Shown: positions 35,286 through 37,689 of the stretch, piece after piece
Layout: each line of letters starts with the position of its first letter
How positions within the stretch are numbered: position 1 is the first letter of the stretch
Virus record (IMG/VR): IMGVR_UViG_3300008261_000001
Coordinates: 186,001 to 250,000 of that record
Strand: one strand, 5' to 3'
DNA: 64,000 bases
Made by a program: the position numbers and the translations under genes
Notes under the pieces: generated by a model
Told to the model about the DNA's origin: nothing
The model's database searches: none
What the model saw: only the letters and a program-made list of their open reading frames with translations

Positions 35286-35972
35286 TTAGACCACACTCAA
35301 AAATGCGGATAACATATCGTAAGTAACTATAAACAAAGGGAAAACCAAAAAGTTTCTGGGACCAAGAACCCCTCGACCCACATGGGGTCCGAAGGCTGAA
35401 CGGATACCGATGCCATATTTGGGTTGTTGTAGTCCACGCATGAACTTGGTGGTTCGTGTTTTGGCTTCTACGCTGGACTGCCACATGGCTTCGGCACTAG
35501 ATTTTAAGCCTTCGTACTTGGAGCTACGCTCCAAATCTAAGGATATGCCGCCGATGGAATATGTGTTGTGGGCGAGTATTCCATTAGCGAGTACAAAGTT
35601 CTCGTTTTTGGGTACACATAGGTCATAAGTGTGTTCACAATTTTCTTCTAGGGTAATGTTTGTAATGGCACACTCTTTAACTTGCTCTCCCTCCACGATA
35701 ACGAGGGTATCCCCCACCGAAAATTGGTCTGTCTCAATGGGCTTAATTTTTCCGCTTTCTAGTGTGAAGAGGGAGTGGTCTTCGGTGGCTATAACAAATT
35801 GACCATTATCGAGTTCTATTCTAAGTATCTTCTTATGCGGTGTGTGGTGCTTCATCACATCAGAGATAACTTGGTATTTTACTTCGCTGGTGTCATTGTC
35901 TACAGACAGTACTTTAAGCTCCCCATTTAAGAAGGCTTGTTTTATTGTTTGTTTGATTTGATTGTCCATCAC
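35286..35972 (-). CDS. split intein C-fragment plus C-extein of head-tail adaptor-like protein
   Basis: Block B ATEDH, block F TYDLCV..NFV, block G HN/T at 35565; extein TYSIGGISLDL. Confidence 0.92.
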   Translation of the reverse strand: MMDNQIKQTIKQAFLNGELKVLSVDNDTSEVKYQVISDVMKHHTPHKKILRIELDNGQFVIATEDHSLFTLESGKIKPIETDQFSVGDTLVIVEGEQVKECAITNITLEENCEHTYDLCVPKNENFVLANGILAHNTYSIGGISLDLERSSKYEGLKSSAEAMWQSSVEAKTRTTKFMRGLQQPKYGIGIRSAFGPHVGRGVLGPRNFLVFPLFIVTYDMLSAFLSVV

Positions 35973-36913
35973 ACGCTCCTTTGCTTTATTAGAGTTTTTA
36001 TTTTTTCGAGACAGATATGGGGTGCGTTGTAGATCTCGTGTTCTTTTATTCTAAGAACAGCCCATCCTAGTTTAGAGAGGTTTGTGTTTTTGGACTTATC
36101 GTTTCCAGATATTCTGTCGGTTGGAGCAAACCCACATATTTCACATCCATGCCAATAACAACCGTCAACCTCTATGGCGATTTTGAGGTGGGGTATGGCC
36201 TCGTCTATTTGATAGTAAGAAACATTGTGCTCGGTTTGAGTCTCTATACGCTCTGAAACGAGGATCTGTTTGAGAGCCTGATGTGGTTTTGTGAAGGTGT
36301 GTTTGATGTATTGTCTAGCATTCTTAATGCTGTCTAGAACTTGCTCTCTATTTTCCTCTTGCCATTTTTGTATTTTTTCATGGTGGGTTTTAGTAGCCCA
36401 CATAGCTTTGGACTTATTGCTCTTCTTGCAGATAGATACTGGGTTTTTATTGGATTTCCTTAGGGATTCCTTAATCCGATCACCTATCTCACTTTGTTGC
36501 ATCTTTGCACTTGCTTGACTGATCTTTTTCCTTGTCTCCTCTCCTTGAGGTGTTTTAAACCTTTCTTTTAAAGTGTTAGATTGTTTAATCTTTTGCTCTT
36601 CTGACTTCTTTTTGTTTCCCTTCGTAAAAGCACACATAACTGGAGCGTCCGTGTACTTTTCGAAGTAAGATTTAAGATCCAAACCCGAGCAAGCCCTTAA
36701 GTGTTTTGTGGTTATTTGGGCGAGCCTTGAACCACATTCTTTACAGAGAACATAATGCTCGTTCTCTTTTAGTAGATTAAAAGAGCTGGATTCAATTAGT
36801 GGTAAATTACCGACTGAAGGTGAGGTCTTGAGAATACCTTCAGTAATCAGGCTCCTTATGTGCTTTTGATTGAATCCATACTCTTGGATTATATCTTTTT
36901 GCTTTATTAGCAT
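35969..36913 (-). CDS. free-standing Vsr/DUF559-like homing endonuclease between intein halves
   Basis: CKECG..HL Zn finger; IDEA..IAIEVDGCYWHG..DKSKN..GWAVLRIKE. Confidence 0.88.
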   Translation of the reverse strand: MLIKQKDIIQEYGFNQKHIRSLITEGILKTSPSVGNLPLIESSSFNLLKENEHYVLCKECGSRLAQITTKHLRACSGLDLKSYFEKYTDAPVMCAFTKGNKKKSEEQKIKQSNTLKERFKTPQGEETRKKISQASAKMQQSEIGDRIKESLRKSNKNPVSICKKSNKSKAMWATKTHHEKIQKWQEENREQVLDSIKNARQYIKHTFTKPHQALKQILVSERIETQTEHNVSYYQIDEAIPHLKIAIEVDGCYWHGCEICGFAPTDRISGNDKSKNTNLSKLGWAVLRIKEHEIYNAPHICLEKIKTLIKQRSV

Positions 36914-37689
36914 TATGACCCTCCTTTTATTATTTCATGGAGTTCCTCAATGGTGAGCTTAACCTTCTGACCGTTGGGGAGCAACACTTCTAGCTCTGTA
37001 TCCCCCCTAACCGAGAACTCGTCCACTATCCAATTTGCTTGTAGAGCCATAGCAGCGAACTGAATGGCACCTTGCAGTATAGGGGTTCTCCAAGCGGGCT
37101 TTTGAGCGATGAGCTGATCTAGGCTAGATATATCTTCGGTCTCAGGAGGTTGCATATTCCACCAGTCTAAAGACCGCTCAAGGTACTCCAACATTTCCTC
37201 GTCTTCCCACACTTGTCCGAAGACGCGATTGTAGTTGTTAATGTGGGACTCGTTCTCAGGTGGGCGGAAGTGATAAAATTTATCTGGGTTAGTGTCACGG
37301 ACCAGCATACGGAGCTTCCAAACCATTGACTTTTGACCCTCAGTCATAGAGGTTCCTAAGACGGTGCTGTCGGATACCACCTCGAACTCTTGCACGACCG
37401 TTTGAGCGGGAGAGTTGACTAGCTCCTTGAGTGTCCACCTTATCCTATATCTACCAAAAGTAGCTGTGGTGGGTATGCGTACTGAGGCATAGTACTCGCC
37501 CACGGAAGGGTTCTCAGGTAGGCGGGCAGGGTCACCTATAAGCACATCGGTTTCAGGTGGACCTACATCTACGAAATAGAGGGCGTAAGTTATCTCAGCC
37601 GCATTGGATACATTTCCTGCCGAGTTGGTGAGGAATATATCCAAGTCGCCCCGCCCAAGTATTTGATTCCTCTTAAAGACGACTGCCAT
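36913..37689 (-). CDS. N-extein of head-tail adaptor-like protein plus 33-aa split intein N-fragment
   Basis: Ends WIVDEF-SVRGDTELEVLLPNGQKVKLTIEELHEIIKGGS (intein block A, Ser1 at 37014). Confidence 0.88.
   Translation of the reverse strand: MAVVFKRNQILGRGDLDIFLTNSAGNVSNAAEITYALYFVDVGPPETDVLIGDPARLPENPSVGEYYASVRIPTTATFGRYRIRWTLKELVNSPAQTVVQEFEVVSDSTVLGTSMTEGQKSMVWKLRMLVRDTNPDKFYHFRPPENESHINNYNRVFGQVWEDEEMLEYLERSLDWWNMQPPETEDISSLDQLIAQKPAWRTPILQGAIQFAAMALQANWIVDEFSVRGDTELEVLLPNGQKVKLTIEELHEIIKGGS

Follow-up and report, generated by a model that had tools for sequence, protein, structure and literature searches.

We have found that a phage gene within a 64,000-nucleotide (nt) stretch of DNA (the window; positions 186,001–250,000 of IMGVR_UViG_3300008261_000001, from a jumbo phage of ~290 kb) is broken into three open reading frames (ORFs). 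These carry, in order, the N-terminal part of a host protein with a 33-amino acid (aa) N-terminal intein fragment (IntN), a putative homing endonuclease, and a 135-aa C-terminal intein fragment (IntC) with the remainder of the host protein. It is very probable that this is a functional fractured gene, restored by trans-splicing of a split intein that was born from invasion by the endonuclease. Trans-splicing, the activity and target of the endonuclease and the role of the host protein in the virion are predictions from sequence. The features of the locus, all on the minus strand, are as follows.

36913–37689, (−): ORF1, 258 aa, a 225-aa N-extein followed by a 33-aa tail
37015–37689, (−): N-extein, 225 aa, a beta-sandwich and helices in an AF2 model, C-terminal ..ANWIVDEF; aligns to residues 1–225 of the ~298-aa contiguous homologs
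36916–37014, (−): IntN, 33 aa, SVRGDT...TIEELHEIIKGGS (ends KGGS), with block A including Ser1 and the N2/helix motif, without block B
36911–36924, (−): ORF1/ORF2 coupling, GGAGG Shine-Dalgarno at 36920–36924 and TAATG overlap at 36911–36915
35969–36913, (−): ORF2, 314 aa, predicted endonuclease
35972–36913, (−): free-standing homing endonuclease gene as predicted, with a CxxC..H..C N-terminal part, putatively DNA-binding, and an EDxHD/Vsr-like nuclease C-terminal part at ~35987–36307
35967–35980, (−): ORF2/ORF3 coupling, AGGAG Shine-Dalgarno at 35976–35980 and TGATG overlap at 35967–35971
35286–35972, ATG at 35969, (−): ORF3, 227 aa from the ATG, a 135-aa IntC followed by a 92-aa C-extein
35565–35969, (−): IntC, 135 aa, with NX motif MKHH, block B TEDH, block F YDLCVP..NF and block G ILAHN
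35286–35564, (−): C-extein, 92 aa plus stop, starting with Thr+1 (TYSIGGISLDLERSSKYE..); aligns to residues 226–298 of the contiguous homologs

The three ORFs occupy three different frames of one strand, and at both boundaries the stop and start codons share a single base (TAATG and TGATG). The GGAGG and AGGAG sequences both lie 6 nt ahead of the ATGs, of ORF2 and ORF3, respectively. No promoter-like (sigma-70) or terminator-like site was found on the minus strand inside the three ORFs, and an Rfam scan of positions 32000–40000 at E up to 0.1 gave no match. An uninterrupted trio of ORFs with no promoter, terminator or Rfam element fits a single transcript with translational coupling. With no Rfam match in the region, we rejected an RNA element, such as a group I intron, as the interruption. 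The preliminary description of this DNA had reported three coupled ORFs with the TAATG and TGATG junctions, the IntN tail ending ORF1 at 36916–37014, and ~135 aa at the start of ORF3 carrying blocks B (TEDH), F and G (HN/T), all of which we confirm from the sequence. Its figure of about 317 aa for the joined product agrees with the extein lengths (225 + 92 = 317 aa), for which the predicted junction is ..NWIVDEF-TYSIGGISLDLER.

The data are metagenomic, and it might be asked whether the locus is really a single ORF encoding a maxi-intein whose endonuclease domain is in frame, in which case the stop codons are assembly or sequencing errors. We give this practically no credence: there are three frames, ORF2 and ORF3 each with their own Shine-Dalgarno sequence and ATG; the same or nearly the same structure recurs in independent samples (the related contigs L003, L004 and L014, then L005, L008, L009 and L010); and many separately called N-piece proteins stop at the same place.

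The host gene and its intein-free homologs

With ORF1 as query we found 908 relatives, of which the commonest class is 295–300 aa long. Proteins of this class match exactly the 225 residues of the N-extein and then continue ..NWIVDEF-DYSIGGISL..KSSKYE.. to a C-terminus ..GRGVLSPRNFL. In the homolog P0007, 88% identical to the window, the junction ..NWIVDEF-DYSIGGISL.. is unbroken. It is also unbroken, as DEF-(D)YSIGG, in L002 (an uncultured 485-kb phage) and in gp319 of the Tunturiibacter phage Tunturi_5. Contiguous homologs spanning DEF|xYSIGG, one of the checks proposed with the preliminary description, are plentiful, at about 100 intein-free proteins: of the top 120 homologs, 93 are intein-free both here (site B) and at a second insertion site (site A), and the intein-free homologs are ~298 aa long. 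In phage records tblastn found only LR745208, Tunturi_5 and the unannotated gp165 of phage G, and megablast of 15 kb against phage records gave no match.

The last 19 aa of ORF3 (35289–35345, (−)) form a hydrophobic tail, VFPLFIVTYDMLSAFLSVV, beyond the usual ..PRNFL end. Similar C-terminal tails occur in P0011, P0070, L008 and L010, and the tail is not latent past the stop codon in other homologs.

Identity and completeness of the intein

Residues 2–103 of ORF3 match the Pfam family Intein_splicing (PF14890) with E 5.6e-15 and 55.9 bits (cut-off 35.8). ORF3 also matches the solved mini-inteins 6rpq, 5o9j and 6rpp (E 1.4e-9 to 7e-8), with no significant match to a PolB16 chain noted among the solved inteins. 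Residue 17–25 of IntC aligns with residue 50–58 of the archaeal mini-inteins and residue 17–18 with residue 30–31 of the DnaE mini-inteins, an offset which indicates that IntC is without roughly the first 30 residues of the HINT domain. These would be supplied by ORF1. A hidden Markov model (HMM) was built solely from 13 contiguous inteins that occupy the corresponding site of the host gene in other phages, and the IntN and IntC pieces were searched separately against it. The ORF1 tail covers positions 1–31 (E 1.5e-4) and ORF3 positions 31–172 (E 6e-54), with the break at position 31. Thus the fragments, for which an intein HMM search had been proposed, give a Pfam match above cut-off and tile the contiguous-intein HMM collinearly. 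No further inteins were found in the window by family-specific HMMs.

The window intein is of the short-IntN type, with a 33-aa IntN lacking block B and a 135-aa IntC carrying blocks B, F and G in separate ORFs; natural short IntN fragments range from ~15 to 37 aa (PMC13014065). IntN terminates just past the motif TIEELHEII (block N2, in the naming of PMC6892783), and the alignment with the DnaE mini-inteins would place the break after helix α1 (the S2 position).

The nucleophiles in the window are Ser1 and Thr+1, both hydroxyl, as had been read from the sequence at the outset. Ser1 is present in 25/25 IntN tails among the top 120 homologs, and TEDH, YDLCVP..NF, ILAHN and a hydroxyl +1 residue align across 24 site-B inteins. 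A His in the NX motif upstream of block B, following Lys or Arg, is reported to be the signature of Ser1 inteins and to contact Ser1 (PMC10189870). All 24 site-B Ser1 inteins have this His, preceded in 20 by Lys or Arg (M-K-H-H in the window), and only one of the 18 related Cys1 inteins of site A has His in the same column. In the MjaTFIIB intein, also of the Ser1 type, the window motif is aligned to SRH. Thr+1 is found also in three contiguous representatives and in one C-terminal fragment (P0239); intein-free alleles carry Asp at +1. The window intein is not cysteine-less in the strict sense: there are three cysteines in IntC (KEC, ENC and DLC), which are not kept in L008–L010, and none in IntN.

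The two halves might merely dimerise, holding the host fragments together non-covalently with no peptide bond made. Split-intein halves bind tightly, Ser1/Thr+1 chemistry is inherently less reactive, and there is a precedent in a split phage NrdA that reassembles via element-derived interaction domains (PMC3045599). Against this, the residues that serve only the chemistry are conserved across the family (in IntN, Ser1; in IntC, the His of the NX motif, Thr and His of block B, Asp of block F and the final His-Asn pair; and the +1 hydroxyl), and the insertion lies, in the model of the host protein, at a helix-to-hairpin junction into which a retained 168-aa domain would be expected to intrude. 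We therefore consider simple dimerisation quite unlikely, and trans-splicing the better account of the two halves.

Origin of the split

The uninterrupted form of the same intein is found in L006 (312 kb) and L007, independent IMG/VR contigs that are 81% identical to the window in the host gene. The L006 intein at site B is 169 aa long and reads ..HEIIKEERMMDNLTKQ... The window IntN is 82–85% identical to those of L005 and L006, and the window pieces are 81–82% identical to the L006 intein. When the DNA of the window is aligned with that of L005 and L006, the endonuclease ORF stands out as a clean block of ~945 nt, present in the window and L005 and not in L006. The block is bounded by ..ATAAAAG(A/G)GGAG and CGT(A/G)TGATGGA, with an AGGAG-type ribosome-binding sequence at both ends, and the L006-type intein allele reads ..ATAAAAGAGGAG|CGTATGATGG.. 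around this place. The sequence GAGCGT(G/A)TGATGGA is common to the ORF2/ORF3 boundary of the window and to L006, where it encodes ..EERMMD... The atypical break point of the intein therefore coincides exactly with the insertion point of the free-standing endonuclease gene.

In a maximum-likelihood tree of 24 site-B inteins, whose deep nodes are unresolved, the contiguous and split labels require 7 changes against a mean of 7.8 for shuffled labels; that is, they are no more clustered than shuffled ones. The only clade of this kind that is well supported is (window,(L005 split, L006 contiguous)), at 98/86, in which the contiguous L006 is nested in a split clade, and the branches starred on the tree force at least two changes between the contiguous and split states. 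Single or multiple gains of the endonuclease, on the one hand, and loss with re-fusion, on the other, are indistinguishable from the intein tree.

Conservation and selection

Both intein halves are under strong purifying selection. The ratio of nonsynonymous to synonymous substitution rates (dN/dS) between the window and L005/L006 is 0.052 for IntN and 0.055–0.066 for IntC, values for which synonymous sites are near saturation; for the ORF2 endonuclease dN is 0.20 and dS is saturated. Independent contigs show the three-ORF layout again, at 99%, 82% and 53–57% identity. At the last of these levels, measured on the host protein, L008, L009 and L010 retain the N-piece, an endonuclease of ~321 aa and the C-piece, the endonucleases being ~40% identical.

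These data bear on the possibility that insertion of the endonuclease killed both the intein and the host gene, leaving decaying pseudogene pieces whose function is dispensable or supplied by another copy. Selfish endonucleases do disrupt genes, a neighbouring endonuclease with DUF7487 repeats is visibly decaying in the 99.6%-identical L014, and the inspected portion is 64 kb of ~290 kb. The reading frames are nevertheless intact, the starts coupled and the catalytic residues kept from 99% down to 53% identity, dN/dS is ~0.05 on both halves, and the search with ORF3 gave a single locus on the window's own contig. A pseudogene is for these reasons very unlikely, and we retain the functional fractured gene as the explanation.

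Proposed mechanism

In the mechanism that we propose, a mini-intein of ~168 aa occupies the highly conserved ..DEF|DYSIGG.. motif of a ~298-aa phage protein, and an EDxHD homing endonuclease gene would have invaded the intein gene past its first helix. A single co-transcribed and translationally coupled operon would then make N-extein-IntN, endonuclease and IntC-C-extein. IntN and IntC would associate as a HINT domain and splice in trans by oxy-ester chemistry. This would begin with an N-O shift at Ser1, with help from the His of the NX motif and from Thr and His of block B, and proceed through trans-esterification by Thr+1, cyclisation of the terminal Asn and a final O-N shift, to give a 317-aa protein with a Phe-Thr junction. 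The endonuclease would cut endonuclease-free alleles of co-infecting relatives, and repair of the cuts by recombination would copy its gene into them; the uninterrupted intein allele is the probable target, the intein possibly being dragged along.

Several points weigh against this reading. Splicing to a product of ~36 kDa and DNA cleavage are predicted reactions, and the HINT fold of the IntN:IntC complex is likewise a prediction. Inteins with oxy-ester chemistry are often slower or more prone to side reactions than Cys inteins (PMC10189870, PMC13014065). The Thr+1 of the window is unlike the Ser+1 carried by the split inteins of L005 and L008–L010 and by the contiguous one of L006. As 64 kb of a ~290-kb genome was examined, an intact paralog elsewhere is conceivable. 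The remaining points concern the host protein: Pfam gave no meaningful family for any of the 36 contiguous homologs, Foldseek of two AF2 models against the Protein Data Bank (PDB) gave no fold match below E 6.8e-4, and there is no synteny with structural genes, the neighbours in the window being a glutamine-synthetase-like gene, a methylase, a ligase and endonucleases.

Identity of the host protein

The chances that the host protein is a neck or head-tail connector component are about even. The family PHROG 17327, 'head-tail connector', is matched weakly by 20/36 contiguous homologs, always at residues ~161–256 and with a best E of 1.6e-4, and gp319 of Tunturi_5 is annotated as a head-tail connector. 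Neither the host pieces of the window nor ten distant representatives matched PHROGs, and a profile of the 36 contiguous homologs gave no match to PDB sequences even at E 10. The AF2 model of P0007, made with a deeper alignment, has a pLDDT of 80 and consists of a beta-sandwich (residues 1–105), helices, a beta-hairpin at 226–235 that starts at site B, a further helix and an extended C-terminus; site A falls within a low-confidence loop at 134–160. The alignment A4, used for the second AF2 model, includes four rows of ~298 aa (P0139, P0144, P0149 and P0167) which are IntC of site A plus the C-terminal half of the host protein, and these add noise to the N-terminal columns.

One weak Foldseek match was to an adaptor, 8gtd_M of the R4C portal-adaptor complex (E 1.6e-2, probability 0.72). 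The other PDB matches (transglutaminase, PD-1 etc.) were rejected as Ig-like noise from the N-terminal beta-sandwich. The best matches in BFVD were uncharacterised phage proteins and gp165 of phage G, which is homologous to the C-terminal half of the host protein; the literature on phage G gp165 and Tunturi_5, consulted for the identity of the host, was unproductive. The gene neighbourhoods of five relatives (L008–L012) are variable and non-structural. Thus the head-tail adaptor suggested in the preliminary description is weakly supported: the predicted helix-hairpin-helix and the weak match to PHROG 17327 fit it, and a significant PDB fold and structural synteny are lacking. Its further suggestion, that virion assembly would depend on splicing, rests on a neck or connector role for the host.

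The endonuclease and its downstream neighbour

ORF2 matches Pfam DUF559 with 25.6 bits (cut-off 20.6), Vsr and MTES_1575 falling under their cut-offs, and also matches homing-endonuclease families of PHROGs. The best solved match of a profile of five ORF2 orthologs is the nuclease of I-Bth0305I (3r3p; E 2.1e-5, profile positions 210–313, spanning the entire nuclease domain), E. coli Vsr (1cw0) reaching only E 0.32. D237, E248, H255 and D272 are invariant in the five orthologs, which are 38–69% identical, D250 is replaced by Gln in one, and the N-terminal half has an invariant CxxC..H..C element. ORF2 can therefore be assigned to the EDxHD (Vsr-like) free-standing homing endonucleases, with predicted activity and target; the EDxHD family was first described in fractured genes (PMC2677866, PMC3239194). 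I-Bth0305I (PMC3239194; PDB 3r3p) resembles ORF2 in its nuclease domain, its acidic and His residues and a separate, putatively DNA-binding N-terminal region. It differs in residing in a group I intron of recA, whereas ORF2 is free-standing in a split intein and has the N-terminal CxxC..H..C element. The natural target of ORF2 is more likely an endonuclease-free intein allele than the intein-free junction, because presence or absence of the endonuclease is relative to the uninterrupted intein allele.

A second putative endonuclease gene lies downstream.

33846–35186, (−): second free-standing homing endonuclease, 446 aa, DUF7487 repeats and an EDxHD-like C-terminal nuclease

It matches Pfam DUF7487 (3.7e-43) and a PHROG homing endonuclease (3.9e-36), and its C-terminus matches the ORF2-family profile with an i-E of 0.0044. 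L002, L006, L009 and L010 have the gene in the syntenic position and L005, L011 and L012 lack it; in L014 it has a 769-nt internal deletion (window 34459–35227). It is an associated mobile element and not part of the split intein.

Two insertion sites in many states

In the window, no intein occupies the second of the two sites in the host gene.

37289–37303, (−): site A, ..LRMLVRDT-NPDKFYHF..

We surveyed the 150 best representatives of clusters at 50% identity. At site B (after ..DEF), at least 15 representatives have a contiguous mini-intein of 157–196 aa, at least 13 end in a Ser1 IntN of 29–41 aa and at least 11 begin with an IntC. The inteins at site A (after ..LRMLLRDQ) are of the Cys1 type and are likewise seen whole, as N-ends and as C-starts, and 7 representatives are middle pieces, in which the middle extein is flanked by IntC(A) and IntN(B). 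The host family is thus an intein hotspot: both sites are found without an intein, with a contiguous one, and with a split one that either does or does not enclose an endonuclease. In L005 (2690–5627) the host gene is in three pieces, site A being split without an endonuclease, with a 90-nt spacer, and site B split with an EDxHD endonuclease. L005 and the middle pieces imply, as judged from sequence, a natural tandem trans-splicing of three fragments by a Cys-type and a Ser-type intein. In L002 (6529–7572) and L006 (3364–4239) the split inteins of site A enclose a TnsA-like (PF08722) endonuclease; the nucleases listed for fractured genes are GIY-YIG and Vsr-like, not TnsA-like (Dassa 2009, PMC2677866).

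L014 is 99.4–99.9% identical to the window in DNA, the main differences being at site A and in the downstream endonuclease. It carries a contiguous Cys1/Cys+1 mini-intein of 465 nt exactly at the site that is empty in the window (compared with L014 5386–5867). The ~15 nt at the empty site differ widely (..LVRDT-N.. against ..LLRDQ|..|C.. in L014) and the flanks are nearly identical; the divergent 15 nt might reflect conversion over a short tract or an allele that resists homing. Directly upstream of the host gene in L002 (4886–6010) is an ORF of 374 aa with no Pfam match, in which a ..YLPDFWVTD.. motif recalls PD-(D/E)xK nucleases and which may be a further mobile endonuclease.

The split might go beyond a selfish accident. 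On this more speculative view, which we regard as unlikely when taken as a whole, the Cys-type intein of site A and the Ser-type intein of site B would build one protein from three polypeptides (L005 and the 7 representatives) as the first natural orthogonal pair of atypically split inteins. Oxy-ester splicing would act as a checkpoint or delay: slow splicing of a neck or connector protein would make head completion depend on timing or concentration or, alternatively, keep the mature conserved protein from appearing early. The Ser1/Thr+1 intein of the window would, on the same view, be the first natural reductant-independent intein split at S2.

Comparison with known systems

The locus resembles the fractured genes of Dassa in the use of one strand, in the order of N-part with IntN, endonuclease and IntC with C-part, in phage origin and in the Vsr-like endonuclease. 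The hosts in that study were enzymes of DNA synthesis and repair and terminase, with one exception of unknown function, and all the inteins but that of terminase were split at the canonical endonuclease-domain site, with an IntN of 88–105 aa (PMC2677866). In contrast, the host in the window is non-enzymatic and probably structural, the split is near the N-terminus with an IntN of 33 aa, and contiguous and split alleles more than 80% identical both exist for the window family. The evolutionary model of the same study (PMC2677866) has as step I a mini-intein, as in L006 at site B and L014 at site A, as step II invasion by the endonuclease, as in the window, and as step III loss of the endonuclease, as at site A of L005. 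All of its steps are thus seen in one host gene, at two sites and in close relatives, and since every step is found among related genomes the model is directly testable.

The TerL inteins AceL and GOS are split after helix α1 (S2), with IntN fragments of 25 and 37 aa, and are cysteine-dependent (PMC13014065, PMC10189870). They share with the window intein a short IntN with block A and, as predicted for the window, the first helix, a long IntC with blocks B, F and G and a phage or metagenomic origin. The window intein differs from both in having Ser1/Thr+1, an NX His and a host other than terminase; GOS TerL is Ser1/Cys+1 and was reported without the NX His (PMC10189870). In VidaL and PolB16 the split follows strand β2. 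PolB16 OarG, called in 2026 the sole known natural cysteine-less atypically split intein (PMC13014065), is like the window intein in its natural split, short IntN, hydroxyl nucleophiles, [K/R]-His in the NX motif and few, non-conserved cysteines in IntC (PMC10189870). It is unlike it in the split after strand β2 (S1), the IntN of 15 aa and the PolB polymerase host. The combination of a short IntN with non-Cys nucleophiles, which the preliminary description had stressed as rare, is indeed present, but with this precedent (PMC10189870) its novelty is below that implied.

The fractured-gene layout, the endonuclease family and short-IntN splits are already known, and the concept is unchanged. What appears to be new, on the comparisons above, is the host and its insertion site, a Ser1/Thr+1 intein with an NX His that is predicted to be split after the helix, and an extensive natural series in which contiguous alleles are matched by split ones, with three-piece genes in relatives. 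The mesophilic Ser-type split inteins that we found in the literature are all in PolB polymerases (PMC10189870, PMC12707363), and the window intein with its relatives would represent, among natural Ser-type inteins with an atypical split, a second lineage. Fractured genes, known from terminase and the enzymes of replication, now include one for a phage protein that is non-enzymatic and probably structural. Protein engineers are looking for natural split inteins that do not depend on cysteine and have a short IntN; the window lineage is diverse, with at least 13 split clusters at 50% identity, and its contiguous counterparts of more than 80% identity are usable as matched cis and trans controls.

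Other genes in the window

The glutamine-synthetase-like ORF (38989–40035, (−)) lies ~1.3 kb upstream of the host gene, has Gln-synt_N and Gln-synt_C domains (E 6e-20) and is conserved in L014. Genes for a family A DNA polymerase (3468–6104), an ATP-dependent DNA ligase (29939–30865), an endolysin (45836–46279) and a baseplate-wedge-like protein (52856–57195) are scattered through the window, most other ORFs being without a family. Scattered replication, lysis and baseplate genes among mostly family-less ORFs fit a divergent jumbo phage of ~290 kb.

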